A stretch of 64,000 bases of DNA from Oculina patagonica. Lineage: Eukaryota. Shown in pieces: positions 556-61,640 of the stretch; the first letter of the stretch is position 1, and every line of letters begins with the position of its first letter. The position numbers and the translations under genes were made by a program. Below the pieces are notes generated by a model. The model saw nothing but the letters and a program-made list of their open reading frames with translations. It was not told where the DNA came from and did not search any database. The DNA lies in contig NC_135761.1 of NCBI RefSeq assembly GCF_052425735.1, positions 21,948,001 to 22,012,000 of the forward strand. The letters are read 5' to 3'.

Positions 556-2775
556 ATGTCTTCCCAAACGACCAATTTTTTGTTACATTTGAATTTTCAA
601 ATGGTGGGGTAGACCTGGAAAAGTTCCAATTTATTTCAATGTCAGAGGCCTTGAGCGTTCTACACCAGACAGCCTTTGGACTTGCCGTTGCTGAGGAGGC
701 GCTTGAATTCGAGCACCGTGACCTCCACTGGGGCAATCTTTTGATTAGCAGAACAAAAGAAGAGTTCATTGAATTCACATTGCTTGGAGAAAAACATATG
801 GTAGAGAGTCATGGCGTCCATGTATCCATTATTGACTTCACTCTCTCACGAATAAAGAAAGGTAATGTCAAAAGTTGCACACAGCAGGGGTACTTAACTG
901 CTTGCTGCAGCCGTTCATGTTCCACTCTTACTTTTATTGTCGGTGAAAGGACTGATGTAATGCGCTCCAGTTGCCAAAAAAAGGGATGACACCTCCCACA
1001 ATTCACACTTCTCGGGCGCGAAATGCAAATTTGTACTTTTGCATTCGTGGCACGTTGTGGTGCCGAGCATCCTTCAAGCTTACCTTGCTTTGAAATCTCA
1101 TGAAAACCAGATATATCATTGACAAAAATATAAAAATATGAGAAATTACTTCCTAACGTTTAACAGAATATTCCTAGCGAAAATGAAAAGCATTATATCA
1201 GTAACAGAGGTGGAAAATACGCAGGTTGTTTGCCAGTTGTTTACGGTTTAATGATTGACTGACAACTAGGTGTGAGAATGGCCAGGCCAGGCCCCTTTTA
1301 TGCCAGAACTTCTTGTTTAAGCGACTAGGAATCCCCCCTGAACGAAATGGTAGTCCATCGTAGGGTATTCCCCCACCATTATATCGCCGGTACCCATTTC
1401 TACATCAGGGTGGGATGAGGCACCTTGAGAGTAAAGTGTCTTGCCCAAGAACACAACACAGTGATCCTGGCCAGGGCTCGAACCCAGACCGCTCGATCCG
1501 GTGTCTAGCGCACTAACCATTAGGCAACCGTGCTTCCCACTTAAGATGAACTTAAATTTATCGTGTTTTGAGCCAAACAGTCTTAAAAATGACTGCCTTA
1601 TTGTTAACATGAGAGTAAAGCATTGTGTCCCCTTTTTGTGATGCATGAAAAGGAAAACTGTATTGGTACATAATTCACTTTTTCAAAAAGGAATAGGTTA
1701 CCCTCATGAGACCCTGAGTTTGGGTTTTCGGTTTTACTTTTAAATGTTATTTTATTTTTAGATGGTGTTGCGATGTTCTGTAATTTGGCGAACGAAATAG
1801 CGTTGTTTGAGGGAAAAGATGATTTTCAGTTTGACGTGTATCGCCTGATGAAAGAGTCCAATAAGTAAGTGTGATTTCTTTGTTGTTTCATATTTATTGG
1901 AACTATTCTTGTTAGGAAAAGTTTTACAGGTTCAAAGAAAGGTCAAGCCCATGTCAGATTAGACCCCAATTCCAAGCATTAACACCGTTTAGTATATACC
2001 TTATTGAAGAAACGTTGACCCTGTGACAACCATAAAGCATACACCATAAAACCGAATGGAATTCTGGGTAGACAGCCTTTGTAAGCTTAGTAATACTCCT
2101 TTTATTGATAGTCAAGATATTTTCTTTCTATCAGATCCTTTTAAGCATGATTTATGCAGCCTGTCTGATTATCGTGTTTATTCTGTCAGAGACGACGATT
2201 ATTTCTTTCGATGTCCCAGGAAACATTTGTGTCAAATCGTTTATGGTTAACGCTTTTCATGGGTCAACGATTCTTCAATCAGGTGTCAAAAGAGAAGGTC
2301 AAAAGAAAGACCCTGCTAATCTTTTTTAACAACTCACAAAACAAATTCAAGATCCACACACTAGAAAGGCAAGAAACAATTTGAGTAAGAAGAGGCAAGA
2401 CTTGAAAGTGATGACCAAGAAACTGGAATACTAAGATGCCTCAAATTCTTGTTTGTACATTTAATGTACGTTTCTCTGACTGAGAGTTGGCACTTTGCAT
2501 GAAGTCAGCAAAAAATGTTAGTGAGGGTGTTATTGTGTCAGGTTGCACTGGTTATTTAATTTTCAAGTGTCTTGTATGTCATTGACAGAAATGACTGGGA
2601 AAAGTTTACAAGTTCAAGCAATGCCCTTTGGCTAACTTACATTGCCAAAAAATTGTTAAAAGACAAAAATTACAAGAACAAAGACAGACGAACGGCAAGA
2701 AAGTTAGAGAGGGTTGCCATGCGTGCGCAGAATAGCTCGTCGGCCAAGGAGTTTTTGAAAGACTTTTTTAACTGA
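556..2775 (+). CDS. HASPIN: Haspin (histone H3T3 kinase) C-terminal kinase domain; last three exons 556-861, 1762-1864, 2589-2775; 5' exons lie outside the window
   Basis: The spliced translation gives haspin-diagnostic motifs: LAVAEEALEFEHRDLHWGNLL, IIDFTLSR, LFEGKDDFQFDVYRLMK and NDWEKF..SNALWLTYI. GT-AG junctions have compatible phases (TTCAG|556, 861|GTAAT, TTTAG|1762, 1864|GTAAGT, ACAG|2589). Stop TGA at 2773-2775. Confidence 0.9.
1318..1538 (-). mobile_element. tRNA-derived SINE in a haspin intron
   Basis: Minus strand has an A-box-like TTGCCTAATGG and a B-box GGTTCGAGCCC, followed by the common invertebrate SINE core TGTGTTCTTGGGCAAGACACTT. Confidence 0.7.
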
Positions 2776-3589
2776 GAAGGTATGGAAGATGTAATTATAA
2801 GTATAACTGTCTTAACTTGGTGCTTGGGAGCCTTGGTTCTTTGTAGCAGGCTAGGTCCTTGGGAGCATTTTTTCAAAGTTGAATAGGAGGAGCTTGTTAC
2901 TTCTAGGTGAAAATTATACAAACGAAGTGAGCGTCGCGCATTTAACACTGCCCCGATTGAATGTGATTTGAGAGACCTGAAAAGTTTGCAATGTAACTAA
3001 TTATCATATAGAAATAGTCGTTCCTTTTGGAAGGCAGGTTAAATATTCAACGAAGTAGTGGCTAATCGTCAAATCCCACTAGCCATCCCCTCCCCCCACG
3101 CAACCTCGTTTTTAAAAATTTTCCTTGTTCTTAGCTTTACTTTGCGTCACAACACGAACAGGTTTAAAACCAAGATTTTGTATTACTTTTTTAAATGATA
3201 AACTCGCATAACCCTATCCAGACAAAAAAGAAAAAAACCAGCGACTTGAATCAAGTTGTATCAACTTCCTGGAATTTCCCATGGAATTCGTAAAGTGATC
3301 TTTTGTGATGGGAATGAGAAGTTTCTTTATATAGGGGGCTAACAGAACTTGTCTGCATTTTTTAAAGGGTGTTAAAATAACAAAAAATCAATCCAATATG
3401 AACTTAATACGCACTTTATTATAAACCTTTCAGTATTTGAAACCGTTAGTATATGATTACAGTTAAATAAACCAAGTAATGCAATGAATAATAATTGAAG
3501 TAAAATGCGTACCATATCAGTGAATAAAACTACACATCCAGAACGACGCGACTTAATCAAGAATTTTAATTTTTCGTTTGTCCTTTACT

Positions 3590-6500
3590 TTAGATGGTGT
3601 GATGAAGTATTCTTTATGATGCTTTACTTAGAAGACGACTACCTTGTTTTATAGTATGAGACAACTTATTTAATGTGTTTCAACTGACGAGGTTACAAGT
3701 AAGTGTGACTTGTTTTTGTTTTGTATAGAGCAACAACCGGAAGCTCTTTCTTTTAATATTTTAGCCAGTGATACTTTTTAATCGCTTTTTATTATGTCTC
3801 ATACTGGCTGCGCTTGAATCTTTAATTGTGTCAAAGTTGTTCAAGAATATCAATCATTTTTGGGAAATGTTTTTTGGAGGGATGCCAAAGGGAAAGCGTT
3901 TTGTTTAAATTTAAAAAAAAACCCGACAGAATGTTATTATGTATATATTGAAAACTATTCTGGGGGTTATGTACCGAACAAGGTGGTAAGTAAAAACAGA
4001 GCCGAGTTAAAACCCGCGCCCTTGTGTGATTATTTACATGTACCTTTTTAAAGGAAAAAGAAATCCCATGACAAACCTTTCTTTCATGTGTACGAAGTGA
4101 GAGACTTATTTCTTAGATCAGTGATGGACGTTCACAAATAGGGATTCCACTTTTTTTGTTTTTGATTTTTACGTCTTTCTCTCTAGATGGTGTGATGGTC
4201 ATGTTTTTTAGCATAGCATAGCATAGCATAGCAGAGAATGAGTTATTTTACTGATAAAGGAGATTACATGTGCCAGTTTAATGTGTATCTCCTGATGAAA
4301 AGTTCAACAAGTAAGTGTGATTGTATTGTTCGTTAATTTTGTTATAGTAAGTTGAAAATATTTCGTATATCGTCACTGTAAGCCTAACTCTACTGGACCT
4401 CAGGTAAATTCGAGTCCACTTGATTCAAGACAATTCATCACAACTTGATTGACTTGAGTCAAGTTGCCGATTTGTACTACCCTTGCTCCTATCCCCGCCT
4501 TTTGGTATGCCAAGTCTCTTCCAACTAGAACTCCAAAAACGCTTAGGTCACACGAGTGGTCACAGCTTCATCACATGTAGTCTAGTTCTTATTTTTTTCT
4601 AGCCTTCCTTATGTCATTGCTGTATTTAATGCTGTTTAACGTGCCTAGACTTCTTGTGAGTCGGGTCGACTTTATGAATCACTAGTTGTCATGACTAAAT
4701 CAAAATTTTGTTTTCCGTAGGTTCTCCACTTTAAATGGTGTGATGCTGTTTTATTGCGTACCTTGTTAAATAGTGTAGAAGATCACTAGCTCAATGTGTA
4801 TCAACTGATTAGTTTACAAGTAAGTGTGACTGTGTTTCGTTTACTTTGTTATTCAGTGTTGTTTGAAAATCTTAATATTCTTTGACAAGATTTATGTTTG
4901 GAGAGGGGTCAAATGTAGAACCCGGAGCTCAAATTTGAAAAAAAAAAAAAAAAAAAAACTAAACCTGCTTTGGGAATATAATGTTTAACTTTAATTTATA
5001 TTGATCTGGATCCGTGTCGGATCCAGACCTTCAGATAAGTGGGGCCCCGATCATCCAGATCCTGGAAAAAAGATGGGGGACGCTCTCAAAAATTACTTTT
5101 CTCGGCTTTTTGGGCTTCCGTTTGACCGAACAATAAGGTCGAGTCCCGTGCCGCCTGTGATGTACCAAAAATCTTTATTGAATTGGTCGGGTACCAGCAA
5201 CGTTTCTTTATAAAAGCCACGGCCAGATTAAAACCCACGCCCTTGTACAATTATTGATATGTACCAACTCTTTTGATAAACCTTGCTTTCATGGGTACGA
5301 AGTAATTTATTTCCAAGATCACTGGGGGAGGTTCCACAAAAAGGGATTTCACTTACTTTTTCCGTTTTTGATTGTTACATCTTTCCGTTCTCTTTAGATG
5401 GTGTGATGCTAATGTTTTTCAGCAAAACTTAGGAGAGGAAGAGTCCTTGTTACTAATAAAGGAGATTACATGTGTCAGTTAAATGTGTATCTCCTGATAA
5501 CAAGTTCTACAAGTAAGTGTGATTTTGTTGTTCGTTAAACATGTTATAGCATTTTTAAAATATTTCTTACATGGTCACTGTATTTTACGCTAAGCCTTTC
5601 TCTCCTAGACCTCAGGTAAACTCGAGTCCACTTGATTCAAGACAATTCATCACAACTTGATTGAGTCGGGTCAAGTTGCCGATTTTTAATACCCTTGCTC
5701 GTATCGTAGCCTTTTGGTATGCTAAGTGTCTTGCAACTAGACCTCTAAAAACTCTTTGGGCTTCAGGTAACACGAGTGGTCACAGCTTCATCGCGTGTAG
5801 TCTAGTTCTCTAATTTTTCTAGCCTCCCTTACATCGTTCCTTTATTTAATGCTGGTTAACGTGCCTTGACTTCCAGTGAGTCGGGTCGAATTTATGAAAC
5901 ACTACCCGTATAAAGTAGTCGTACCGACTCAATCAAAATGTTGTTTTTCGTATGTTCTTCACTTTAGATGGTGTGATGCTGTTTTATTACGTACGTTGCA
6001 GAAAAGGATGAAACCTTGTTTAATAGTGTTGAAGATTAGCAGCTTAATGTGTATCAACTGATTAGTTTACAAGTAAGTGTGACTGTGTTTCGTTTACTTT
6101 GTTATTCAGTGTTGTTTGAAAATCTTAATATTCTTTGAGAAGATAAATGTTTGGAGAGGGGTCAAATGGAGAATCCTACGCTTAAATTAAAATAGACACT
6201 TTTTGCTTAGGGAATATAACGTTAAACTTTAATTGATATTGAAAAATCTCCTGGAGGCTAATTCCGTGGTGGATCCAGATCTTCAGATAAGTGGGTCCCC
6301 CGATCATCCAGACCACGTAAAAAGAGGAGGGTCCGCTCTCAAAAATTACTGTTTCTCGGCCCTTTGAGCTTCAGTTTGACCGAACAATAAGGTGGGCGCC
6401 TGGGTCCCTTGGGCCCCTTTCCGTAAATCCGCCACTGCTAATGTACCAAACACATTTATTGAGATGGTCCGGTACCCAGCAAGTTTTGTTATAAAAGCCA

Positions 6501-7125
6501 GGGCTAGGTTAACACCTGCGCCCTTCTTCAATTATTGGCAGGTACCTTTAAAGGAGTAAGAACTCCTTGGATAAACCCTGCTTGCATGTGTACGATGTGA
6601 TTTCTTTTTTCAGGGATTTCACTTAATTTTTTTTTTGATTTTTACGTCTTTTCCTGTAGATGGTGTGATGATCTTTTTTTTCAATTATTACTTAACAAAT
6701 GATGAGTCCTTTTTACTGATAAAGAAGATTACATGTGTCACTTGAATGCGCATCTCCTGATGATAACAAGTAAGTGGGATGGTGTTGTTTGTTAATCGTG
6801 TTATAGAAATTTGAAAAAAATTCTTATATCGTCACTGTATTGTACGCTAAGCCTATCTCTACTAGACCTAAGGTAAACTCGAGTCCACTTGATTCAAGAC
6901 AACTCATCACAACTTGATAAACTCCGGTCAAGTTACTGATACGTACTATGATTTAATTCTAAGATCACTGAGGGAGGATCTCTTTGTTTTTATGTCTTTC
7001 ATTTTAGATTGGGTGATGCTCATGTTTCGAAACTTAGAAGAGGATGAGTCCTTGTCACTGATTAAGGAGTGGACGTGTCAGTTTAATGTGCTTCCCTGAT
7101 GAGAAAGTTTAACAAGTAGGTGTGA
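3590..7125 (+). pseudogene. About seven degenerate tandem copies of the haspin 1762-1864 exon with splice-site context; includes a ~1.2-kb tandem duplication unit
   Basis: TTAGATGGTGTGATG...AAGTAAGTGTGA blocks at ~3591, 4184, 4731, 5394, 5963, 6657 and 7003, all frameshifted or containing stops. 4185-5390 resembles 5395-6650. Confidence 0.8.
6264..6437. mobile_element. Short MITE-like element; degenerate copy at ~5013-5160
   Basis: Imperfect terminal inverted repeats GTGGTGGATCC...AAATCCGCCACTG; present in both copies of the 1.2-kb duplication. Confidence 0.5.
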
Positions 7126-8286
7126 TTGTGTTGTTCCTTAGATGTGTGATAGTAGTTTGAGCTTTATTCTAAGTCGCTGTATTTTACGCTATGCTTTTCC
7201 TTATCGTAAATTTTGGCGGCCATTCTGTTGACAATCGCACGCTGTTTCTCTACTCACTTTTTAAAATAGAATAGATAGTGAGTAGCGTAGCGTAGCCAAT
7301 CAGAGAACAGCATTCGTGATAGAACGCTAGTAGTTTTATACTAAAAGCTCTTTGATCTTTAGCTGGTGTAGCTTTCAGTGTACATGAAAATAATGCTTCA
7401 AATCATTTACAAGATATATATCTATCTATTCTAGATCTTTCAAGTTACTGGCAACTTTTAAGCCAATGATGAGCCATGGAAGGCGGGATTTTGATAGCAA
7501 GCTGCTAGAGTTTATTTTCTTAGTACCGGTATGATTCACATTTCACAACGTTTTCTTACTTGGAGATGTGCACGAATATTAATTTATTTTCTAACGCGTC
7601 TTTTCTTCTTAGTGACATTGATTGATTTCTTTCATGATGGTGATCAGTGGGTGAACAGGATTGATAACTATGCCGGGGGCCAGAAAAAAAAAAAGTGGTC
7701 CCTGATAATAAGTATAGAGATCACAAGGGAAAGCTGCTTTGATCTGTTAACAAATTCTCCTATTTAAGACTATCAGTAAGAGGAATTTTATGTGGATATT
7801 TGGACTTAAAGGGTATCCATTTAAAAGCAGTCATAGCACGAAGTGACTTGTTTTTGTCATATAAACAAGACGCCCAAAGGCAGATTACGTGGGATGTGAA
7901 GCGACTTCCACTGTCACATTCTGTTAACGTACAGATAAATAAAAATGTTAACACTCAATAAAGTAATTTAAACTACCCTAAGCTCACGACACGAAACGTA
8001 CGGGAACACGACCATTAACTTCAAGCAGTGTTCTGTAACAAAGATGAGATTTACAAGGGTTTCTAAATACGGTAAAGTAAACCTTTTTTTCAAGAGGTAT
8101 AAATCATTTCGGACATTGCCGGCGACGAGAGCATACTATCAAGCATACTCTAGGTGAGATTTTAAAGCGACGGGGACTTTTGAAGCAAATTTATAGTTGC
8201 AGTAACTTTGATATTTTCGTCTTGATCTCAGTATAAATGCTTCGACGGGAAACAAAAACCGGTTTTCGGGATACGCGAAACGTCTG

Positions 8287-8287
<1 letters not shown>

Positions 8288-8333
<46 letters not shown>
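8288..8333. repeat. (CAAT)n microsatellite
   Basis: About 11 perfect units, seen directly. Confidence 0.95.
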
Positions 8334-9119
8334 CACGTTTCTGACTATGATTTAGGAATAGGAAAAAAGGTAACTCGAACGAATTTTATACGTGGGCGTC
8401 CGTCTTGTGTAAAATGAAGGATACTTTCGTGGTAGGATGATTAAAATCATGATTAATTTCTGATTTCTTTTCCTTTAGTTTTTGCGTGTTACTGTAAGGG
8501 AGCACCAGTGACGCGGGGAAGAAGGCGCAGAGCCGTCAAAGACAAATGATACGATAAGGTAAGAATAACAATTCCAACGTTTCTTAAAATGATGTAACTT
8601 TTATGTGTGTGATAAAATGTGAATAAATGGATTTCATAAAGGGTCCAGAATGACATTAACCACATCCAGTCGTTATACTTTTGTGTCATACTCAAAAATG
8701 CAGCTTACGGCCCAATGAAAATATCGAAAATTGGAGTCGAAGGCGGAGTCATATGTTCGACAGAATTCGAGTAGGTAGAAACAGAACGGATTCTATTGCG
8801 TATAACTCCGTCACTTATAATCCAGTAAAAAAAAACCCTGGAGTCCAATGCTAGTTCTCACCGTTCTTCGAGTGCTTCCTTTCTGCTTGCACCTCAAACA
8901 ATCTAGTTTTTACTGATCATTAGCGGTTTTTAAACCGCTAATGATCAATTAAAATTTCCATCCACTAATTTGGTGGGATCCGATCTATGCTTACATTTCC
9001 AATCACTCTAGCTTTTCACAAAGGACTCAGGCAATCCAGTAAACTGACCACAATTCGTACACGACACAAGACACAGAGAAACATGTGCGAGCCAGCGAGT
9101 CACGAATACTTTTCATTTA

Positions 9120-9135
9120 GCATCGCACCGGTATC

Positions 9136-9169
<34 letters not shown>

Positions 9170-9289
9170 TGAATTTTTTTCAGGCTTCTTTATTCCAATT
9201 GCTTAAATTGAAAAATCACTGCGACGATCATTTATCACTCTCATATACATCCGCAGTTCATATATGAATCATTTCATATACATTACATC
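9120..9289 (+). mobile_element. Truncated copy of the tRNA-derived repeat family also found at 61035-61640
   Basis: Nearly identical to ~61261-61435. Flanked by a 12-bp direct repeat ACTTTTCATTTA (9108-9119 / 9290-9301). Confidence 0.85.
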
Positions 9290-9557
9290 ACTTTTCATTT
9301 ATTTTTGATTGGTTGAAACACTGGCGATATTTTTTATCTACTTATAGTAATCTTTCGGTACTTAATTAATCAATAAATAATCAATTTCTTCCCCTCGCCT
9401 CAGATTTATCTTTATTTTCCCGTTTAGCAATCAATTGAAAGACAAATGCAGATCCGAATAACACGTGACCCTGACGGTGGTGTGCTGATGCTCAATTCCG
9501 GAAGTGAAGAAGGCCGATTTATTTTCACTCCAGGTAACTCGTGTGCAGCACTGTTTA

Positions 9558-9742
9558 CTCTCTCTCCTAGCCTCCGCAGAGGTCTCTTTCGTGTTCCCTA
9601 CGGGGTGGGAAATGGGGAGGGGTAAAAGGTAAGCGCGCGGAGCCTGGAGAGAATCGAAACGAAAGCGCGCGAGGGAAATCGTCTTCCTCCCTCCGGTTTT
9701 TTTCGCCTTCCGCCACTAAAGGAGCCTCTGCGGACGAGAGAG
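9558..9742. mobile_element. Short MITE-like element
   Basis: Imperfect inverted ends CTCTCTC..CCGCAGAGG / CCTCTGCGG..GAGAGAG. Confidence 0.45.
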
Positions 9743-11147
9743 CTGTTTACTTAAATTGCACTGTAACTTCAAGGTAGAAATAGTTAAGGAGGGGAAAGGG
9801 AGTTTCGTCCTTAAAATTCTTTTATTTCGACAGTCTGTTTGTTGTCAGATTTCCTGTTCTTGGCCTTGCGTTGAAAGTTGAACCAGTTTTCCTGTCTCTT
9901 ACCTGGTTAGGTGGTACCATATTATACTGACGGGGATTAGGAGAGTAAAATCATTGTCTCGAACAGCTTCAGAACCTAAAACCGTTATTACAACTAAACA
10001 GTTTTAACATGGGCACGGTTACTAGCACAATATAAACGTTGTGAAGGAAAGACGCTCACCGTGGACAGTGATTGCGATGGATATTCTGTGACAGGTTTGA
10101 TTGTCACACATTCTTTAGTACCGTTTTCCTTTCAATTAAGATTACAGATTTAATTAGTTAGAACGTCACACGATCCCACAAGGCTTCAGAAGCGCACCGT
10201 GAGAATGAAAGAAATTCTGCGAACAGAACTATGTGTTATTTGGCTTTAATTAGTAAACATGATTGTTTTCTTTCATACTTTTAGAACATCTTCACGCAGA
10301 GCACAAATTGTTTATTTTATACCCTACAAGAACGTACATCGGGTGATTGAGCCCTCCAGCCTTGGCTAGCTGTATGTGAGATTAACGGCCATCGCAAGAT
10401 TCACAGGTATTGTGTAGGATGGTCTGGGTTGTCTCTGTTTCTAAATCTTCATACATATTTTTCGCCTCTAGTGATACAAACTACCTTTAACTTCTACAGA
10501 GCTGTCTGTTGCATTGGACGCTACAAGAACGTTTATTGGGGAATTGAACCCTCCTGTCTTGGTTGGCTGTATGTGAGATTTAACGGCCATTGCACAATCC
10601 ATAGGTACGGTACAGGTTTTCACTGTTTCAATATACGTTTTTTTAATTTTTTTTTCGCCTTAAGTGACGCCTTACTTTCGTACTTACCTTCAGCATGCGC
10701 ACAGCGGTCACTTATTTTGTTTTGTTCTGCACGGAGGAAGAAGAAGACGGCTAACTTACCTTATGTTGTGAAACGTGTCGTCTTTTTATTAAATTTAAGA
10801 CGGAATCAGGCAGGACTTCGAGTATTAAAAGGACACGGTTTTGTAACAAAATTATTTACATCTTATTCAGAAACTTCTGTGTCACTGTTTGAAAAAACTT
10901 ATGAAAAGATATCATTTTACCAAACGTCGAGGTGCACTGAACGCTTAAAAGAAAATTTAACCAAACAATCTTCATCTGAAAATGTACGTTCTCGTAGTTC
11001 TTATGGAATTTGGAAATCATGTTATAGGGCACTGATAAGAAATTATGTTGGTGCAATCATGAATAACTATACTTCAGTAGTGAGGAAAGGACCGAATTAG
11101 CCGTTTATTTGTGGAATTAATTATTTTTTTGTGGAATTAATTAAGTG

Positions 11148-11370
11148 AGTGACGTCATAGAGGCGTCAGTGACGTCATCAAAAATGGGGCGTAAATGACG
11201 TCATAAAATGGGGTGTAATCTAAAAATAGAAAAATTACGTCATTGGGGTGTAATCTAAAAATAGAAAAATTACGTCATTGGGGTGTAATCTAAAAATAAA
11301 AATTACATCATATCGGAGGGTAACCCCGCCTTGACCAATAGCCATAAAAGAAGCTGCTTGCAGTTCAGTC
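11148..11370 (+). promoter_or_regulatory. Terminal regulatory region of the Polinton: ATF/CRE sites, GC boxes, 35-bp tandem repeats, CCAAT box, TATA-like box, Inr; mirrored at ~16394-16616
   Basis: TGACGTCA x3 (11150, 11170, 11196) and TTACGTCA x2; GGGGTGTAATCTAAAAATA.AAA repeated 3 times; CCAAT at 11335; CATAAAAG at 11343; TCAGT at 11365, upstream of ATG 11402. Confidence 0.6.
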
Positions 11371-11401
11371 TATTCTCAGAGTTTACACCGTTCAGATCAC
11401 A

Positions 11402-11935
11402 ATGTACAGCAGTTATAATCAATTCTTTCAAGAGGGTTATGGAAATATCATATTACCCGATGACAGTGGAGATGAAAGCGATGATGAGAGCTCACAGGAA
11501 AGTGAACAGTCATTTAGTCAAGATTCTCAATCGAGCGAAGAAATAGACTCTTCCCAAGAACAAATGGAGCATATAGATCCCTGGTCGCGCATTCAAGATG
11601 AAGTCACTAGTCGTCACGAAGCCAAGCTCGAAACTCTGATAAACGAGTATGAACAACATGGAGATGTGTCTGAAGTGGCCCGTGTTAAGGCTGAAAATGC
11701 TCTGCTACCAGTATACAGGAAGGAGCTGAGAAAAGTTCTTTTGGAGTATTTACAGTGGATGCATGCAATGAGGAAAGATTCGACCTTCCGTAAAGTGATA
11801 GAGACCAAAAATGAATTGAAAGATACAGAGGGATATGATTGGTTAGAATCGACAGAACTCGCTATCGATAAAAAAAATAAGCGAAAATTCTTACTCAATC
11901 GGTTGTTTGTCAAACAAACTGTTCCCGAACACTAA
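11402..11935 (+). CDS. Polinton accessory ORF A (acidic Ser/Asp/Glu N-terminus, helical C-terminus), left arm, 177 aa
   Basis: Intact ORF with promoter-like elements upstream and AATAAA at 11993. Identical to the right-arm copy apart from an in-frame 9-bp insertion (KNK). Confidence 0.7.
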   Translation: MYSSYNQFFQEGYGNIILPDDSGDESDDESSQESEQSFSQDSQSSEEIDSSQEQMEHIDPWSRIQDEVTSRHEAKLETLINEYEQHGDVSEVARVKAENALLPVYRKELRKVLLEYLQWMHAMRKDSTFRKVIETKNELKDTEGYDWLESTELAIDKKNKRKFLLNRLFVKQTVPEH

Positions 11936-12798
11936 GTGAACTGTGCCTGTTAATCTTTTCTGGTGACACCTCTGTCAATGTTTTTAATAATCAATAAACG
12001 TATTTTAAAAGAGAAAAAACCTTCCTTCTTGTGTCTCGCGGTGCGCAACTTGTCTATATAAACGCCTATAGATGCTAATTTCTTAAGCAAACTCCACCAA
12101 GTTTATACCGTAATTCGCTTAAATGCTCATACGCGTTCTCTACCGTTTGAATTAAGATAAAACCAAACATGTGAAACATAGGTTTACAAGTCAAAAAAGT
12201 TGTACATCGATCAAATTTTTTTCACAAAATCGGTTCACTGAGCTGGTCTTACAATTTATTTTACTCGTAACTGCTCAATAACTCCATATTGCCAATGTAG
12301 TATTGCCGTATTGGCCGCTACGAATTTTTTGCTGTTTGTAATAATTGCTATTTGATTTTCTTGGTTGCTCTTTGTCACTCAACTGGTTAAATGATTTATT
12401 GATCTTATGAACTTAACGTAATAAGAAATTTTGAAATGGAAAACTTTTAGAAAGTTTTGACAGTAAGAAAGTTTACTTTAAAGAAATGTAAATGAACTGT
12501 TGACAGGTTTGAGTGTGAATTTTTCGCTCCGATAATAACCCTTGGGAAAAGCATGTTAGTAATGCCTTTGTGTTAAGCGAAACCCCTAATTCTGGAAAAG
12601 TTTAATGAATTTTTATGAAGTAAATAATAAGAGTTTTTTAAAGGAAATAAACTGAAGAAAATCACTTAATTTCCTCTTTTAATACACTGTTATTTATACA
12701 ATAGCCGTTGACATTACATTCTTTTAAACAAAGATTGCAAAAACAGACTTAAACCTATATGTCCGTGTCATCCAACAGCAAATGTTTATGCAAAAACA

Positions 12799-13173
12799 TT
12801 ACAGAGAAAGCCACCGTGGATGTTGACGTGTTGTTATTTTAGACCGTTTGCTAGTCTTGTCTGTTTTTCGAATGCTTTTACTTCTGTTTTTCAATAAATC
12901 CTTTGATTTTCTTGGTGTGGATAACTGGTAGTTAATGTCAATGCCTTGTTGTTGAATAGACGGAGGTATGGTACACGCTTTAAGTTTTTGGCTGTTCTCA
13001 GTGTTTTGATAGATGATTACTTTAACTTTAGGTTGTAGTTTTGCTTCTTGTAGCCACTTTCTTCTTTGATTGTGATCCAGCTGATGAACATTAGTAAGAT
13101 GGTTAGATAATTTCACGAGATATTTTGCTCCACATCCCGGAACCGGACAGTCTCGGCAAACTCTTCTAACCAT
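12799..13173 (-). CDS. Polinton accessory ORF B, C2H2-like zinc finger with a basic tail, left arm, 124 aa
   Basis: CPVPGC-x9-SNHLTNVH motif; K/R-rich C-terminus; TATATAA about 60 bp upstream. Confidence 0.7.
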   Translation of the reverse strand: MVRRVCRDCPVPGCGAKYLVKLSNHLTNVHQLDHNQRRKWLQEAKLQPKVKVIIYQNTENSQKLKACTIPPSIQQQGIDINYQLSTPRKSKDLLKNRSKSIRKTDKTSKRSKITTRQHPRWLSL

Positions 13174-13512
13174 GTTAACGGCATGAAATATTGACGCAAA
13201 TGAGAGAGTTTTGTTAATATCCTTGTGTTATATAGACGCTACTGAAGGTCAAAAAGGACAAAATGAGGTCAAAAAGGACAAAATAAGGACAACAAGGACA
13301 AAACAAGGACTAAAAGGACAAAAGGAGACACGAGGGACATTTAAGCTATATGTTTCGCTGCAAACGCGCGTGGAGAACGCGCGTGGAGAGAGCGCGCGCG
13401 TGTCATTTGAGAGATTTTTTTTTTCTTATCTATGTAAAAATCACTGAAAAATAAGTTAATAATTTCACGATAAAGGAAATCTCTAATTTCTCATTTCCAG
13501 AAAGATAGAACG

Positions 13513-13860
13513 ATGTTCGCTCTTGTTTTCCTAACGTTCATATTATTTCACTATTCTAACGCCTGTTTAGAGGGAAACTGTCGCTGCTATGAAGCTATGG
13601 AAGTAATCGACTGTTCACACAGAGATCTATATTCATTACCATACCCAAAGTTTGCCCTGGTGAACTATACCTCGATTTTACTGCGTGACAACAACCTTCG
13701 ACACCTGAATTTAACCCATCTATTCAAAGTGTTTCCACGAGTGATGGTTTTGGATTTGCGTGACAATGATCCGGTATTGTGCGATGATAATCCCTCATTT
13801 TCATGGTCTGTTTGCGATCTGAAGGCTTTTGATAACTCCCAGTGCTTGAAGTATAAGTGA
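13513..13860 (+). CDS. Signal-peptide LRR protein, left-arm version (115 aa; C-terminus derived from antisense loop sequence)
   Basis: Signal peptide MFALVFLTFILFHYSNA; LRRNT CLEGNCRC..IDCSHRDLYSLP; LRRs ILLRDNNLRHL and VLDLRDND. Branch point CTCTAAT and acceptor TTTCCAG (13500) just upstream of the ATG. Confidence 0.7.
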   Translation: MFALVFLTFILFHYSNACLEGNCRCYEAMEVIDCSHRDLYSLPYPKFALVNYTSILLRDNNLRHLNLTHLFKVFPRVMVLDLRDNDPVLCDDNPSFSWSVCDLKAFDNSQCLKYK

Positions 13861-14260
13861 GATTGTTTTGACGATGGGTGGGCGAATTTGTTGAGAGGAC
13901 GGCTGTCGTAATCTCTGTGCCGGTATTAGTAGAATTACAATCAGAGATTATAATAATCGACTTGGAGTTGTGGTACCTTTCTATATCATCACACAACACC
14001 GGATCATTGTCACGCAAATCCAAAACCATCACTCGTGGAAACACTTTGAATAGATGGGTTAAATTCAGGTGTCGAAGGTTGTTGTCACGCAGTAAAATCG
14101 AGGTATAGTTCACCAGGGCAAACTTTGGGTATGGTAATGAATATAGATCTCTGTGTGAGCAGTCGATTACTTCCATAGCTTCATAGCAGCGACAGTTTCC
14201 CTCTAAACAGGCGTTAGAATAGTGAAATAATATGAACGTTAGGAAAACAAGAGCGAACAT
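13724..14260 (-). CDS. Signal-peptide LRR protein with a Ser/Thr-rich stalk, right-arm version (178 aa; natural sequence to ~13771, then truncated by the fold-back)
   Basis: Same N-terminus as the left copy, continuing LCDDIERY..IISDC and a T/S-rich stalk (STNTGTEITTAVLSTNSPT). Confidence 0.75.
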   Translation of the reverse strand: MFALVFLTFILFHYSNACLEGNCRCYEAMEVIDCSHRDLYSLPYPKFALVNYTSILLRDNNLRHLNLTHLFKVFPRVMVLDLRDNDPVLCDDIERYHNSKSIIIISDCNSTNTGTEITTAVLSTNSPTHRQNNLTYTSSTGSYQKPSDRKQTMKMRDYHRTIPDHCHANPKPSLVETL

Positions 14261-14599
14261 CGTTCTATCTTTCTGGAAATGAGAAATTAGAGATTTCCTT
14301 TATCGTGAAATTATTAACTTATTTTTCAGTGATTTTTACATAGATAAGAAAAAAAAAATCTCTCAAATGACACGCGCGCGCTCTCTCCACGCGCGTTCTC
14401 CACGCGCGTTTGCAGCGAAACATATAGCTTAAATGTCCCTCGTGTCTCCTTTTGTCCTTTTAGTCCTTGTTTTGTCCTTGTTGTCCTTATTTTGTCCTTT
14501 TTGACCTCATTTTGTCCTTTTTGACCTTCAGTAGCGTCTATATAACACAAGGATATTAACAAAACTCTCTCATTTGCGTCAATATTTCATGCCGTTAAC

Positions 14600-14974
14600 A
14601 TGGTTAGAAGAGTTTGCCGAGACTGTCCGGTTCCGGGATGTGGAGCAAAATATCTCGTGAAATTATCTAACCATCTTACTAATGTTCATCAGCTGGATCA
14701 CAATCAAAGAAGAAAGTGGCTACAAGAAGCAAAACTACAACCTAAAGTTAAAGTAATCATCTATCAAAACACTGAGAACAGCCAAAAACTTAAAGCGTGT
14801 ACCATACCTCCGTCTATTCAACAACAAGGCATTGACATTAACTACCAGTTATCCACACCAAGAAAATCAAAGGATTTATTGAAAAACAGAAGTAAAAGCA
14901 TTCGAAAAACAGACAAGACTAGCAAACGGTCTAAAATAACAACACGTCAACATCCACGGTGGCTTTCTCTGTAA
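14600..14974 (+). CDS. Polinton accessory ORF B (zinc finger), right arm
   Basis: Protein identical to 12799-13173. Confidence 0.7.
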   Translation: MVRRVCRDCPVPGCGAKYLVKLSNHLTNVHQLDHNQRRKWLQEAKLQPKVKVIIYQNTENSQKLKACTIPPSIQQQGIDINYQLSTPRKSKDLLKNRSKSIRKTDKTSKRSKITTRQHPRWLSL

Positions 14975-15837
14975 TGTTTTTGCATAAACATTTGCTGTTG
15001 GATGACACGGACATATAGGTTTAAGTCTGTTTTTGCAATCTTTGTTTAAAAGAATGTAATGTCAACGGCTATTGTATAAATAACAGTGTATTAAAAGAGG
15101 AAATTAAGTGATTTTCTTCAGTTTATTTCCTTTAAAAAACTCTTATTATTTACTTCATAAAAATTCATTAAACTTTTCCAGAATTAGGGGTTTCGCTTAA
15201 CACAAAGGCATTACTAACATGCTTTTCCCAAGGGTTATTATCGGAGCGAAAAATTCACACTCAAACCTGTCAACAGTTCATTTACATTTCTTTAAAGTAA
15301 ACTTTCTTACTGTCAAAACTTTCTAAAAGTTTTCCATTTCAAAATTTCTTATTACGTTAAGTTCATAAGATCAATAAATCATTTAACCAGTTGAGTGACA
15401 AAGAGCAACCAAGAAAATCAAATAGCAATTATTACAAACAGCAAAAAATTCGTAGCGGCCAATACGGCAATACTACATTGGCAATATGGAGTTATTGAGC
15501 AGTTACGAGTAAAATAAATTGTAAGACCAGCTCAGTGAACCGATTTTGTGAAAAAAATTTGATCAATGTACAACTTTTTTGACTTGTAAACCTATGTTTC
15601 ACATGTTTGGTTTTATCTTAATTCAAACGGTAGAGAACGCGTATGAGCATTTAAGCGAATTACGGTATAAACTTGGTGGAGTTTGCTTAAGAAATTAGCA
15701 TCTATAGGCGTTTATATAGACAAGTTGCGCACCGCGAGACACAAGAAGGAAGGTTTTTTCTCTTTTAAAATACGTTTATTGATTATTAAAAACATTGACA
15801 GAGGTGTCACCAGAAAAGATTAACAGGCACAGTTCAC

Positions 15838-16362
15838 TTAGTGTTCGGGAACAGTTTGTTTGACAAACAACCGATTGAGTAAGAATTTTCGCTTATCGAT
15901 AGCGAGTTCTGTCGATTCTAACCAATCATATCCCTCTGTATCTTTCAATTCATTTTTGGTCTCTATCACTTTACGGAAGGTCGAATCTTTCCTCATTGCA
16001 TGCATCCACTGTAAATACTCCAAAAGAACTTTTCTCAGCTCCTTCCTGTATACTGGTAGCAGAGCATTTTCAGCCTTAACACGGGCCACTTCAGACACAT
16101 CTCCATGTTGTTCATACTCGTTTATCAGAGTTTCGAGCTTGGCTTCGTGACGACTAGTGACTTCATCTTGAATGCGCGACCAGGGATCTATATGCTCCAT
16201 TTGTTCTTGGGAAGAGTCTATTTCTTCGCTCGATTGAGAATCTTGACTAAATGACTGTTCACTTTCCTGTGAGCTCTCATCATCGCTTTCATCTCCACTG
16301 TCATCGGGTAATATGATATTTCCATAACCCTCTTGAAAGAATTGATTATAACTGCTGTACAT
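15838..16362 (-). CDS. Polinton accessory ORF A, right arm, 174 aa
   Basis: Mirror copy of 11402-11935. Confidence 0.7.
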   Translation of the reverse strand: MYSSYNQFFQEGYGNIILPDDSGDESDDESSQESEQSFSQDSQSSEEIDSSQEQMEHIDPWSRIQDEVTSRHEAKLETLINEYEQHGDVSEVARVKAENALLPVYRKELRKVLLEYLQWMHAMRKDSTFRKVIETKNELKDTEGYDWLESTELAIDKRKFLLNRLFVKQTVPEH

Positions 16363-16753
16363 TGTGATCTGAACGGTGTAAACTCTGAGAATAGACTGAA
16401 CTACAAGCAGCTTCTTTTATGGCTATTGGTCAAGGCGGGGTTACCCTCCGATATGATGTAATTTTTATTTTTAGATTACACCCCAATGACGTAATTTTTC
16501 TATTTTTAGATTACACCCCAATGACGTAATTTTTCTATTTTTAGATTACACCCCATTTTATGACGTCATTTACGCCCCATTTTTGATGACGTCACTGACG
16601 CCTCTATGACGTCACTCACTTAATTAATTCCACAAAAAAATAATTAATTCCACAAATAAACGGCTAATTCGGTCCTTTCCTCACTACTTACTTCAATCTT
16701 TTGCTTTAAAAAAAGTAGAAAATAGCGAAGTATGACTAAAATTGTTGTTGTAT

Positions 16754-16894
16754 CCTGGCGTCAGTTGTTCAAAGGGTTGATAACGCTATCCACCGGATAG
16801 ATCACTCTCTTGTCTATAACAAAAAAGGTTTTGTATAACAATTATGGATAGTGATTTATCCGGTGGATTGCGTCATTTGTACAACTGGGTCCTG
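16754..16894. mobile_element. Short palindromic MITE-like repeat
   Basis: CAGTTGTTCAAA..ATCCACCGGATAGATCACT / AGTGATTTATCCGGTGGAT..ACAACTGG inverted halves. Confidence 0.6.
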
Positions 16895-19269
16895 ATGGAC
16901 TCTGTCTTAACTTTTTTTCATGTACTTTTGTCTGACAGGTCTAGCAGAAATGGTGGCGACGATTTCGCCATTCGCGTCCCAAAAACGTGAAAGTTGTAAT
17001 AGACGAACACCACTTTAAACGCGGCACTCGAAACGGGAATCCTATGTCACGTCCAAACAGCGATGTTCCCAACGCGGTCATAGAAGATGGATTTGATCCC
17101 ATCCATCGGAACAATCTCCCTCCGATGAAACCCCTGCAGTCTTACTTCCCCAGGGGCGTCCCTTCCCCAACGAGAGACGTCTTGCCAGAGGAATCACTGC
17201 GGAGTTTTTTTTACCAGGGCTCTGGGTACCCGAACAACTCGCTATGTACCTCAGGAGACCCTGAGAGCGATTCAGAGGCAGATGACAGTTATGTAAATGT
17301 TAATATCATGGCAGACATGTTCAGAAATTGCATGACTCCCTTGGTCCCTTTGTCCACACGACGAGGTCATTAGAGAGTAAAATAATGGGAGTCAAACATA
17401 ACGAGTATAAACACTAGCACTTTGCCTTGGCCTGGCACATTTTTCTCTGCACATACAAACTTCTCTTAACTCTTTATGTTTATCAAAGATCTAAAAACTT
17501 CTTACTGTATTAACGAACAATGGCCGGGACAAGCTATTTGTGTGTGTGTGTTTTTTTTAATGTTACACGGAAAAGCGCGAGAGCCTATCAACCACCGTGC
17601 TCTGGAGGTTTGATCTTCTGGAAAAAAATATTTTCAAGTAAAGAACAGAATTCTTTATTTTAGCATGGTACAAGAGAAATTCTTCCAAAGAAAGTACTGG
17701 AGAATGTTCTCAAAGCAGTAAGAAGAAGGTTTTGCAAAGATCTGAAGAGAAGAGTCATAAGCAATACGCCTTTATGTTAAATAGAAGACGAGTTATCATT
17801 TTCAATCATACGACAAAACTTGTAAAGCACGTTTTAAACCTCTATTATCTTCATTAATAAGTAGTCATGCAAATTGCTAATAAGGATAAATACATCAATA
17901 AGAATAAGGATAGATACATTAAATCCAGGATAAATAGTGAAAGCAAAACATGAAAATGTGAGAATTAAAAAATCATTTTAGATCAATATGGTGTAATTGA
18001 TGGTGAGGTAGATCTGTTTGAATATAAATAGCTTAAAAGCTGGAAGAGGCGTGATGTAAAAAATTGATATGAAAGCAATCGATTAAACACAAGCTTAAGG
18101 AGCGACAATGTTTAAAATTCAGTAGATGCTTGAAAATATGATAGGCTTTATCACGTGTGGAAAAATGTCGGGTTGTTTCGCTGACATAACAGGCTTCAAA
18201 GCTCGCACATGCAAACTTACAAACTACACATGCACGCGAGCAAAGCCAGCCGTGATTCGGGTCTTTCGATTCACGCCAAACAACTACAACTTATTACAAC
18301 TGGGTAGTAGATAGTGTGGGCTGACAATGATGCCTTTTTTTTTTAGCAAAACAACCCCTTTCCATAAGATCTTGCTGAAAATAGAAAAGAAATCAATGAA
18401 ATAAAAATAAAATCAACAAGACTGCCACTAAATTTTATTGACATTGCAAGCAATTAAATAACCATTTTCCCTTCATTATGTTAAGTTTTGCCACTTTATT
18501 ATCATTGGCGTTCATTAAATTATTTTTCACGAAAGAACCCCAACGTAACCCTCGAAGGAGGGAGAGTAACAGAAAAAGCATTCAATCAAAAATAATAAAA
18601 AAGTCCGAGAAATAAAAATATTTCTCAAACGCTCTGTCATTATAAAAATCCGGACGAAAAACGTTTTTTCTTCCTTTCAACTTAGCCTCAACGAGGAAAA
18701 TGAGAGACGTGTTTATTGATGGGCAATTTCTAACCTGACCCTTACGCCGCGAGAAAAATGACGCCTTATTGCAAGTGAGGAAATTTCCAAACCTGTGATT
18801 TGGAAAATGCAACCAACAGTAATTCTTGTGAGCGATGTATAATGAGACGAACAGCGTAGTCTCGACAACAAAACAATCTTACGATTTAAAGTGAAATTTG
18901 GTGCTATCATCTTGAATTTACCTAAACTTTATCAAAAGAGCACTTTTCCACAGTGCAGCAACATTTTGCTAAATGTTTAATGCAAAAATGTACAATATTT
19001 CACATGGGTGAAGGCGCATAAGCCAACATTTGGACTTGTTTTATACTTTTTCCTGAACCGATCCGATTATTTTTCTTCCTGCTCTTCATATCCTTACTTT
19101 TGTTAGAATACGTTTTGACTTAATCATTGGAAAAACCTGAAAAGGGGACCTTAATCAATTACAGGTTTATTGGCTTCTTTACGCACAGGTTTTGCAACAA
19201 AAACGGATCGTGTTTTTAGGAACTAATCTTATCTAAGACCAGCATATTAAGCTTTTACTAGATTACATT

Positions 19270-25840: not shown

Positions 25841-28800
25841 AGTGCCTATCACCCTTATCCAGTAATATTATTTTTCGAAAGTCTTTGTATTTTTTAAGCA
25901 TTTTACGAAAAAATAAATCGTATTCTGTGTTTCTTCATTTTTTTATCAGCCGAGCAAAATCCTCATTTTAAGCCTATTTTCCGCCATATTTAACAAAGAA
26001 GGGAGCAATTGGGAGACTGGGTACTAACTTGCTTGTGACGTCGACCCGGTATCTCATTCACGATTCATCACTCGATTTACTGTAGTAAAACAAGGGAAAA
26101 TATGCCGGGTAGATGTGTGGTAGGTGGTTGCTCCTCAGTTCCAGATGTTAAAAACGGTATAGTTCTACATGCTATACCGTTCTTAGGCGATGAAAGAGCT
26201 GAAGCTAAAAAAAGAAGAAAGAAATGGGTCGATTTTGTGAAGGAAAAGCGAGCCAAATGGAACCCGACTCCCAACTCTTCCATTTGCTCAAAGCACTTTA
26301 CCTAAGATGACTATATGCGTCGCTTCACCTTCGCAGACAGTTTGTCAAACAAACCGATCATGCCAAGGTTAAAACGGGACGATTTAGGTCCAACTGCATA
26401 TCCAACCGTTCATGCCGAAGCAGTGGTAAAAAAGCCAGTTGTGAGTGAGAGTGCCAAACGTCGTCTTGAGCGAGCGGTACAGTATCTTGCCCAGTTTCCG
26501 GCCACTTTAGTTTGTAATCGCTATAACTTCTCATTTATGCACGGAAAGTTACTCATTTTTTGTTCAAAGACAGTTCATTTACTTACCTTAAAAATGTACA
26601 AAAATTGGTTGTGCACGACAAGTATTAAAGAAATTATGCCATTTTTTGCAGAAGTAGTAAGTTGCCCAGTTTCCGGCCAGGTGGTCCAGTTTCCGGCCGT
26701 CGAACTAAAACACATTTTCCCCTACAACCGCTCGACTTAAACCGACTTGTAAGTCCCTTGACAAACGAAAAGTAAGTTTCAATATCAGTTTATTCTAATT
26801 TGCTTTCTCGCCTGCCGTTTTATGGAATATTTCCTCGTCAATGACCCGTTACCTTTTCTTTCGCCAGTTTCGCTTATTAGGATGCATTGGCAGTGTATAC
26901 ATATAAATGTTGTAGTTTATCACGCTATGCTTGCTTTAGCCGCTTTTGTACTCTTTGCTAGATATTCATTTCATAAATTTCTCGAGCAGGAGATACTAAA
27001 ATTCAGTTATTTCACTTAATAAAAATGCTTTTGAACAATGTGCTACTTGGTGGCCGGAAACTGGCACAGCGAGTCCAAATCTTTGTTAAAACTCTGACTT
27101 CTGAAATTCAGAAACAGCTGAATTCTGGCTTGTAATGACAGAACCCCTAATCACTTTCATCTTTAATCTAAATTCTGTCAAAAAATTACGAAGCTTCTCG
27201 AAAAGTTTCCTACGAAACGAGCTCTTTGTTTATGTACGGTAGCTTTGATGTGCAGTGAAAAGCGCAAAAATTAGTCGCCTAACGTTTACTCGCGTAAACA
27301 AAGATCGACCTTGCTCGTCCGTTTCTTGACCAAAAAGCCTGCCAGAACCATCAATTTGTAGCGGAAATGTTCCTTTTTCTGTAGGAAAGCTTCGGTGGAC
27401 GAAAATAAAAGATAACTACGAAAATAACCGACGAATGTATTTTTTGGCCGGAAACTGGTACCGGCCGGAAACTGGGCAACAGACTGTTAAGCAATGTTTC
27501 TGTCAATTGTTTTTAACTTCTCGATTCATTTGTACAGCCACTGAAATTTCCTAAAAGCATTAATCAAGTCTTTAATTTCTTTAGACGCTCAAGAATGCAA
27601 AAAGGCGTATGGAGAGTTTTACAACAACTCATGATCAGTCGGCATCTTCCACGTGTAGCGGCGAATTACCGGCAGTACAACCGGAAGAGCCAGAAGTCCT
27701 AGAAAGTCCAGAAGCGCTTGTTGACAACAGCTTCATAGCAGTCGAACAATGCGACGCAAATAGTGTGACTGAGTTTCAGTATTCGGTAAGTAACTTTGCA
27801 GTGTTTTAAGGCCAATCTGCTACTTTTTGCCCGTGTATTACAATCGGACGCCGAGAAATTCGCCTATGGGTACTTTCTAGGATTTATGCCGACTACTAGG
27901 GCATGCAATCAAGGTTGAGTATATCATTTACATGTAAAAGTTTGTGGATATTTCGTTTCGAACTTGTGTTTCACAGTCTGTTTTCTTACTTAGCGTAAGC
28001 TTGTATAATAATATTAGTGTGTATTTTTTATACATATAGAATCAAGAACAATCAACAGTTACAGCTTCCATGCCAGAATGTGTTGAATGCAAGAAGTTGG
28101 ACAAACGAAACCGGGTGCTGAAAAACCACCTTATTACTGCAAAAACCAAACTAAACAACTGCAGACTGGAAATAAAGAAACTTAAGAAACAATTGGAGGA
28201 AAACAGACCAGGTATTTTTTTGTCATGTATTATTATTTTTCATCATGCTGATTAAAAGTTTAAGCTTATGTGAAAAATAGCTACAATAGTATTCCTTTTA
28301 CAATTTTTTATTAATCAGGAATAGATGTCCCACCTGAGAAAATTTTTGATGACAATGAACAACATAATGATGAAGAAAACGAACATGAGGACACTGAAAG
28401 TTTACCGGATGAAACAACAGAAGAAGAACCTGACTTTTCTTCTGATGGATACTATGAACCAGAAACTGACATGGACACTGCCTCGGAGCATGAAGAAGAC
28501 CTGGATTCTGCAGGCGACAGGTGAATTTATTTGTTTTCTATTTTTGTTTTCCTTTCAGCGATGGTTTTCAAAAATAAGTATACAATTCTAACTGTTTACC
28601 CAAGTGTATTATATTCTGCTTTCACACATTAAATACAATGTAGTTGAGAGAATGAAATCACCACCTCCCCCCTTTAATAGAATAAAAAAAAACACATTGA
28701 GGTAAGGGATCATGAGTAAATTTTCGAAATATTCTGTTTTAAAAATGTCTGTTTTGTCACTTTTCCATCCCCTTGCAGAGTGAATATCAATGACACCAAT

Positions 28801-61034: not shown

Positions 61035-61156
61035 ATGTAATGTATATGAAATGATTCATATATGAACTGCGGATGTATATGAGAGTGATAAATGATCGTC
61101 GCAGTGAATTTCCAATTTAAGCAATTGGAATAAAGAAGCCTGAAAAAAAAAATTCA

Positions 61157-61190
<34 letters not shown>

Positions 61191-61276
61191 GTTACCGGTG
61201 CGATGCTCTACCAACTGAGCTATTGAAGCCATGTGTGGCTTCAATAGCTCAGTTGGTAGAGCATCGCACCGGTAAC

Positions 61277-61310
<34 letters not shown>

Positions 61311-61531
61311 TGAATTTTTTTTTTTTCAGGCTTCTTTATTCCAATTGCTTAAATTGGAAATTCACTGCGACGATCATTTATCACTCTCATATACATCCGC
61401 AGTTCATATATGAATCATTTCATATACATTACATCATTTCACTCCTCTCACGGGAAAATATGAACTCACAATTGACCTCGCTCCCATGTGTGGCTTCAAT
61501 AGCTCAGTTGGTAGAGCATCGCACCGGTAAC

Positions 61532-61565
<34 letters not shown>

Positions 61566-61640
61566 TGAATTTTTTTTTTCAGGCTTCTTTATTCCAATTG
61601 CTTAAATTGGAAATTCACTGCGACGATCATTTATCACTCT
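61035..61640. mobile_element. tRNA-derived repeat: one inverted partial copy plus ~1.6 tandem 255-bp units, inserted in the Gypsy protease
   Basis: TSD CAATCACAGAAGAG (61021-61034 / 61641-61654). Unit period 255 (61232 to 61487). Cloverleaf-like head GGCTTCAATAGCTCAGTTGGTAGAGC...GGTTCGAATCCCGTTGAAGCC. Confidence 0.9.

Follow-up and report, generated by a model that had tools for sequence, protein, structure and literature searches.

A probable core-less palindromic derivative of a Polinton/adintovirus-like lineage in the stony coral Oculina patagonica

How does a mobile element come to consist almost wholly of one end facing its own inverted copy? The question is raised by a stretch of 64,000 nucleotides (nt) from the genome of the stony coral Oculina patagonica (contig NC_135761.1, positions 21,948,001 to 22,012,000), hereafter the window, whose own numbering is used below. 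Positions 11076-16688 of the window, internal to the contig, form a near-perfect palindrome of 5,613 bp. An earlier note, made from the letters alone, had read it as one end of a Polinton that was folded back on itself and then integrated as a unit. Judging from comparisons with related sequences, the element is very likely a core-less palindromic derivative of a Polinton/adintovirus-like lineage of stony corals, in which the right arm served as the template and the left arm is its folded-back copy.

Structure of the palindromic insertion

The bounds of the arms were set by global alignment of one arm with the other. The left arm covers 11076..13789 (+, 2,714 nt) and the right arm 13984..16688 (-, 2,705 nt), with a central loop of 194 nt (13790..13983, -) between them, and the inverted repeat makes up 97% of the element. 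Between the arms there are five substitutions (left/right positions 11361/16403, 12208/15565, 13614/14159, 13776/13997 and 13782/13991) and one 9-bp insertion or deletion, giving an identity of ~99.8%. The repeat of ~2.7 kb described in the earlier note indeed runs through three open reading frames (ORFs) to a loop of ~194 bp, but the arms are not perfect copies of each other.

The element starts with AGTAGT and ends with ACTACT, and AGTAGTGAGG is read inward from either end. Directly outside both ends lies TACTTC (11070..11075 and 16689..16694), a perfect 6-bp target-site duplication, for which the odds of a random match are ~1 in 4,096. Both the termini and the duplication were found at the exact element ends, in agreement with the earlier description. 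The 27-nt terminal sequence occurs at only two places in the window, the two ends of the element, compared to an expectation of 0 from shuffled sequences, and the window contains no runs of N. In the left terminal region (11076..11311, +), the AGTAGT terminus is accompanied by tandem repeats of 20, 26 and 35 nt and by three TGACGTCA motifs at 11150, 11170 and 11196. The right terminal region (16453..16688, -) shows the mirrored tandem repeats and the ACTACT terminus, with TGACGTCA at 16561, 16587 and 16607.

Each arm carries three ORFs, which are gene A, gene B and an LRR-like ORF that crosses the junction between arm and loop. The left copy of gene A (11402..11935, +) encodes 177 amino acids (aa). 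It is preceded by a CCAAT box at 11335 and then an ATAAAAG box, and an AATAAA signal at 11993 follows ~60 nt past the stop codon. The right copy (15838..16362, -), which likewise has the two boxes and the AATAAA signal, encodes 174 aa, the ancestral length. Gene B encodes 124 aa, with a Cys/His zinc-finger-like motif at the N-terminus and a basic tail, and the proteins from its left (12799..13173, -) and right (14600..14974, +) copies are identical. Upstream of gene B lies a (AAGGACAAA)n-type tandem repeat (13245..13323, mirrored at 14450-14528), which is also present upstream of gene B in other corals. The LRR-like gene is represented by its 5' part only, of which the original (13773..14260, -) reads from the right arm into the loop and 92 codons are duplicated in the copied arm (13513..13789, +). 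No PolB ORF was found in 11076-16688 or elsewhere in the window, and the element has neither an rve integrase nor a virion module (capsid, packaging ATPase, protease). The palindrome is therefore devoid of core genes, as the earlier note had it.

Polarity and turning point of the fold-back

Alignment with homologs of the LRR-like ORF revealed which side of the palindrome is continuous with a gene. The minus-strand reading, from the right arm into the loop, matched the full-length homologs well past the junction, with both their conserved ISDC block and their Ser/Thr-rich stalk included in the match. The match of the plus-strand reading ended where the left arm ends. At the nucleotide level, window positions 14385 down to 13773 were collinear with positions 9877-10513 of L075, a PolB-bearing coral locus, with 503 identical columns out of 606, and the left arm matched L075 only as far as the junction. 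Collinearity with full-length LRR-like genes thus extends over the right arm, the loop and the innermost ~17 nt of the left arm. This identifies the left arm, except for its innermost ~17-19 nt, as the copy and the right arm as the original template. The fold-back truncated the LRR-like gene once, on its 3' side, and the transmembrane and tail part of the homologs is missing.

The innermost 19 nt of the two arms (13771..13789 and 13984..14002) form an imperfect inverted repeat that pairs at 17 of 19 positions and probably marks the fold-back point. Two of the five mismatches between the arms fall within the innermost 14 nt (P about 2.7e-4), and at both of them the left-arm base is the same as that at the orthologous downstream position of the LRR-like gene in L075. 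This is the pattern predicted if the turn was primed at a 19-nt imperfect inverted repeat that already existed in the gene, and we infer such priming from it. The three substitutions outside the turn are evenly spread and do not discriminate between histories before and after integration.

Relatives of the element in stony corals

The lineage of the element is indicated by coral loci that carry PolB. One of them, L077, is a complete element of 13.66 kb (1593-15250) with AGTAGT termini, terminal inverted repeats (TIRs) of 229 nt and the target-site duplication GTCATC. It encodes PolB, an A32/IVa2-like ATPase (Pox_A32, E=2e-7), an rve integrase (E=3e-12) with a chromodomain, and a homolog of gene B just after PolB; its capsid candidates gave no Pfam match. 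TGACGTCA motifs are located near both ends of L077, as in the window element. The LRR-like ORF had 68 homologs at E up to 0.001 in a representative library, and the closest were small proteins that possess a signal peptide as well as a cluster of cysteines. Two of the homologs could be placed on contigs (L074 and L075), and both lie tail-to-tail with a gene of at least 1,000 residues. We identified the product of this neighbor as PolB based on its identity of 51% over 98% of the length to a named adintovirus PolB and on PF03175 in several of its homologs, and its best PolB relative sits in L077. In Oculina, L076 is a further PolB-bearing element with an AGTAGT terminus. Its gene B lies downstream of PolB and shows 94% protein identity, the interval between these two genes contains a weak remnant of the LRR-like gene, and the B module of the window arm matches the region just downstream of PolB with 87% nucleotide identity over 1,137 nt. 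PolB is thus present in the relatives L074-L077. When 12 termini (11 independent ones) were aligned, AGTAGT was the sole block that is invariant from the window copy through to the complete element.

The Polinton lineage proposed in the earlier note is therefore supported by the shared termini, 6-bp duplication, TGACGTCA motifs and B homolog of L077 and by the adjacency of the LRR-like gene to PolB in L074 and L075; termini matching no Polinton, which would have spoken against this lineage, are not what was found, since AGTAGT is shared with an element that has both PolB and integrase. Polinton/Maverick (adintovirus-like) elements, which are abundant in stony corals, have the 6-bp duplication, 5'-AG termini and TIRs in common with the window element (PMC11131425; PMC8502044), and 5'-AG is also the terminus type given for Polintons elsewhere (PMC6839031). 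The coral elements with PolB and integrase share with it, in addition, the terminal hexamer, TGACGTCA, gene B and the LRR-like gene next to PolB. However, Polintons are 13-25 kb long with inverted repeats of 100-1,500 bp, as opposed to 5.6 kb and 97% inverted repeat here, and the window element lacks their PolB, integrase, ATPase, protease and capsid genes. The definition of a Polinton requires a polymerase and an integrase (PMC5499653), so that the element belongs to the Polinton/adintovirus-like lineage and yet falls outside the definition.

With the coral PolB alone as the query, no relatives were found in IMG/VR. A PolB profile scan returned 17 non-coral adintovirus-like contigs, and none of these 17 has a homolog of A, B or the LRR-like gene. 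Two non-coral IMG/VR contigs with related PolB, L090 (1-12) and L082 (1-12), begin with AGTAG-like sequences (GTAGTAGTG... and AGTAGAAG...), which hints that the AGTAGT terminus type is wider than corals.

The second group of relatives has no core genes. Three complete copies were found, which all start with AGTAGT and carry their own 6-bp duplications: L001 (4523-13650, TTTGTA, TIR of about 310 nt), L002 (9355-18629, TGTATT, TIR of 191 nt) and L003 (8564-13522, GCAGAG, TIR of 1,207 nt, about 100% identical and including gene B). Insertion as a unit is therefore routine in this family. L001 and L002, both from Oculina, are collinear apart from one insertion of 4-5 kb each, which indicates a core of ~5 kb, and the usual order is repeat, B, A, ~1 kb and the ACTACT terminus. 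Polymerase, integrase and capsid ORFs were found at none of the 73 loci around copies of A or B. Like the window element, these A/B elements (L001, L002, L003, L004-L008) have AGTAGT termini, 6-bp duplications and both genes but no core genes. Unlike it, they measure ~5 kb, have TIRs of 190-1,207 nt and usually B before A, lack the LRR-like gene and do not form full palindromes. The window arm has a mosaic composition, with a terminus 95% identical to a solo end in Oculina, an A module 88% identical to L001 and L002, and a B module 93.6% identical to L072.

In the A/B family (L001-L008), each gene occurs in hundreds of copies across robust and complex corals, and these core-less elements may constitute a separate, satellite-like lineage. 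The solo end in Oculina (L001:19817-20039) was considered as part of an autonomous partner and rejected, as it leads into satellite-like sequence instead. Long ORFs beside copies of A were likewise rejected as Polinton genes, having proved to be LINE, BEL/Pao or NLR-like. The NLR-like ORFs were seen in coral metagenome contigs, with HEPN-NB-ARC-TPR at L049:608-3487 and TPR only at L057:2-1651. The sole near-identical sequence outside the window was L073, a Logan contig of 980 bp (SRR11296594) that covers window positions 12299-13278, including gene B, with 99.9% identity. It probably came from the same or a very close species, and it cannot distinguish the left arm from the right.

Genes A and B had ~490 and ~390 homologs, respectively, and all those with a species name were from stony corals. 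The best matches were from Oculina patagonica, with identities of 90% for gene A and 93% for gene B. Pfam and PDB sequence searches with A and B returned nothing above threshold, profile scans of IMG/VR found no relatives of either, and the AlphaFold models (pLDDT of 55 for A and 51 for B) were too poor for a fold search. The N-terminus of the gene A product is acidic and rich in serine, its C-terminal half is helical and conserved, and the gene B product has an invariant Cys/His motif within the first 50 residues in addition to its basic tail. The ratio of nonsynonymous to synonymous substitution rates (dN/dS) was 0.13-0.31 for gene A, including a comparison of two copies within one genome, which indicates that gene A is under purifying selection; long-range comparisons of gene B gave ~0.3. 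The left copy of gene A has an in-frame 9-bp insertion that adds three residues without counterpart in any homolog, and the insertion is therefore younger than the duplication of the arms. An exact-protein look-up of the 174-aa form returned no record. The earlier note had expected A, B and the LRR-like gene together near one end of the parental element. Linkage to PolB was found for B and the LRR-like gene, but not for A, which belongs to the ~5-kb core-less elements that share the same termini.

Inverted duplications of other extents were found in the family. The inverted repeat measures 1,207 nt in L003, 1,484 nt or more in L076, where the right repeat enters an assembly gap, and about 2.4 kb in L075. 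In L021 (949-5519), arms of 1,235 nt with B and A form diverging B-A pairs around a loop of 1,170 nt. L025 (1-2157) is a small palindrome with arms of ~830 nt, a loop of 366 nt, a turn in or after gene A and an AGTAGT terminus. Among these sequences, the window copy stands at the far end of a continuum made by repeated inverted copying. The PolB-bearing L075 (1-19651) has ends at 74 and 19651 that share the flank ATCGGT, an inverted copy of its left arm at 15557-17951, a LINE insertion and a PolB in three pieces. No integrase, ATPase or capsid ORF was found in L075 or L076. In these two loci, from two corals, long inverted repeats enclose PolB together with B or the LRR-like gene, and the loci look like PolB-only derivatives with long repeats.

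Origin of the palindrome and its surroundings

The following course of events would explain the present structure. The parental molecule would have begun at what is now the right terminus (16688) and extended leftward over A, B and the LRR-like gene, and it probably continued into PolB, by analogy with the relatives. A strand made from the right terminus would have stopped inside the LRR-like gene, and its 3' end would have paired with the 19-nt imperfect inverted repeat ~200 nt upstream. Extension would then have copied the strand back to the terminus, leaving two identical ends and the 194-nt loop, with everything beyond the turn lost. Both ends keep the AGTAGT terminus and the subterminal repeats, and the palindrome could therefore have been recognized by the integrase of a complete element. 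Such a helper integrase would have inserted it as one unit and created the TACTTC duplication.

That the fold-back took place on a free replicating genome and was followed by integration of the palindrome is, in our judgment, about an even matter, and the whole chain with the fold-back before integration falls just short of that. More tentatively still, the locus could be a snap-back defective Polinton genome fossilized in the germline, made in protein-primed replication and integrated as a unit by a helper integrase. The core-less relatives with their own duplications, the two precise termini and the terminal AGT-AGT reiteration support a free-genome history. Protein-primed replicons such as adenovirus use short terminal repeats for jumping-back initiation, and by analogy the AGT-AGT reiteration could be a repeat of this type. 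Other observations weigh against this history. No helper genes were found in the window, and an exact-protein look-up of the junction-crossing ORF returned no record. No PolB-bearing locus sampled has a homolog of gene A, so that the parent may itself have been non-autonomous. Furthermore, L075 shows that an integrated element of this family can still acquire an inverted duplication. Searches with each flank of the window element on its own showed both to be unique in the sequence data searched and revealed no paralogous empty site.

A full or longer element could also have integrated at TACTTC and been folded back in place, when a later break or stalled fork was repaired by priming at the same 19-nt repeat. 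The new strand would have re-annealed with the element's own left TIR, and the left part would have been replaced by the inverted right part with no new integration. This history accounts equally well for the junction, the polarity and the intact duplication, and the pre-existing TIRs of the PolB-bearing relatives, from 229 nt to >2 kb, could have guided the re-annealing. In L075, the inverted copy of the left arm also includes 73 nt of host flank beyond the AGTAGT terminus, and that duplication must therefore be post-integration. However, many kilobases lying between the break and the left TIR would have to be lost in a fold-back in place, nothing that derives from a different left end is visible, and unit insertion is routine in the core-less relatives. 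We consider it the less likely of the two histories. It is far harder to derive the element by internal deletion from a parent with natural long TIRs, each holding A, B and the start of the LRR-like gene. Long TIRs do exist in the family (1,207 nt with gene B in L003, ~1.5 to >2.3 kb in L075 and L076), and gene-bearing TIRs of ~2 kb have been described in butterfly Polintons (bioRxiv 10.1101/2025.02.07.637071). However, L074, L075 and L076 each have one copy of the LRR-like gene or its remnant, located outside the repeats, and in L076, the closest PolB-bearing relative, the repeat ends before gene B. Moreover, only on one side is the loop collinear with the gene, and a microhomology marks the switch. 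A deletion of this kind is thus very unlikely. The earlier note had favored one folded-back end over a deletion between natural TIRs, and the single-copy gene, the loop that continues it and the turn at the 19-nt repeat agree with that choice; none of these three loci represents a parent with natural gene-bearing TIRs of >2.7 kb, which would have contradicted it.

Fold-back chimeras are a known artifact of long reads, and a chimeric read assembled as a palindrome would give a similar picture. Such an artifact is highly improbable here: the arms differ at five sites and by the 9-bp indel, the asymmetric loop continues a real gene, the palindrome lies inside a contig with unique flanks and a perfect 6-bp duplication, and similar structures occur in relatives from other assemblies. 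The least probable origin, to which we give hardly any weight, is another superfamily with 6-bp duplications (GingerRoot, Ginger2/TDD) or a long-TIR element of the Foldback/Galileo type. Duplications of 6 bp are not confined to Polintons (PMC6839031), and the element has no polymerase or integrase gene of its own. However, its termini are AG...CT, as opposed to TA...TA in GingerRoot and TG...CA in Ginger, which encode an integrase-like DDE transposase (PMC6839031), and its AGTAGT termini, motifs and gene B recur in a complete element with PolB and integrase. An identity with GingerRoot, Ginger2 or Foldback/Galileo was rejected on the termini.

Structural parallels to the window element are found among viruses. 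Incomplete particles of adenovirus were reportedly described by Daniell in 1976 as containing genomes of the snap-back/copy-back type. Defective viral genomes of this type are defined in the literature (PMC13506859). Like the window element, they carry one end as an inverted duplication in a near-full palindrome with a small asymmetric center, have lost the core genes and have the same origin-type terminus at both ends. The window element has this structure, with arms of 99.8% identity, a loop of 194 nt that is collinear with a gene on one side and a 17/19 repeat at the turn. Unlike snap-back genomes, it is chromosomal and inherited with a target duplication, and its formation during replication is inferred. 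The butterfly Polintons resemble it in that their long TIRs duplicate whole genes, but they keep core genes between the TIRs, where the window element has only the 194-nt loop. Foldback and Galileo of Drosophila are cut-and-paste elements of the P/MuDR type with longer target duplications and other termini. They share with the window element very long, internally repetitive inverted repeats that make up most of the element (PMC3573991), but have no link to a polymerase-bearing element. Neither full-text literature searches nor targeted term searches within papers turned up a Polinton derivative that is core-less and almost fully palindromic and whose turning point has been mapped. The earlier note did not recognize the element as a described type, which holds in the literature searched for the palindromic core-less form but not for gene-bearing Polinton TIRs of ~2 kb, which were already published.

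Adenovirus-like, protein-primed replication of Polintons has been inferred from gene content, and we know of no direct demonstration of it. A palindrome with a readable turn, polarity and microhomology is a by-product of the kind to be expected from such replication. If the window element is a snap-back fossil, it would provide sequence evidence for the replication of animal Polintons as free linear genomes and for the release of defective ones, and fold-back would be a general route to longer TIRs and to core-less satellite families such as the A/B elements. If the fold-back occurred in place, the locus would still be a clean natural case of palindrome formation primed by a short inverted repeat in an animal germline. 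The family spans TIRs from 190 nt to 2.7 kb, inverted duplications, PolB-only derivatives and hundreds of core-less two-gene copies, which suggests that fold-back copying is a main source of structural change and of non-autonomous offshoots in coral Polintons. The element also shows that derivatives can carry pieces of accessory genes, here of a secreted LRR-like protein.

The rest of the window has no Polinton genes and contains remnants of other mobile elements. A BEL/Pao element lies at 46276-51667 (-) and a fragment of a Mutator-like transposase at 28780-29310 (+). The regions 35242-37575, 53450-56102 and 59812-63532 (all +) hold LINE-type reverse transcriptases and a PNMA-like gag followed by a Gypsy-type reverse transcriptase/RNase H. 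Approximately 90 nt to the right of the palindrome, a small hairpin at 16780-16876 has arms of 30 nt that are 87% complementary and 37 nt apart, and it may be a miniature repeat in the flank.

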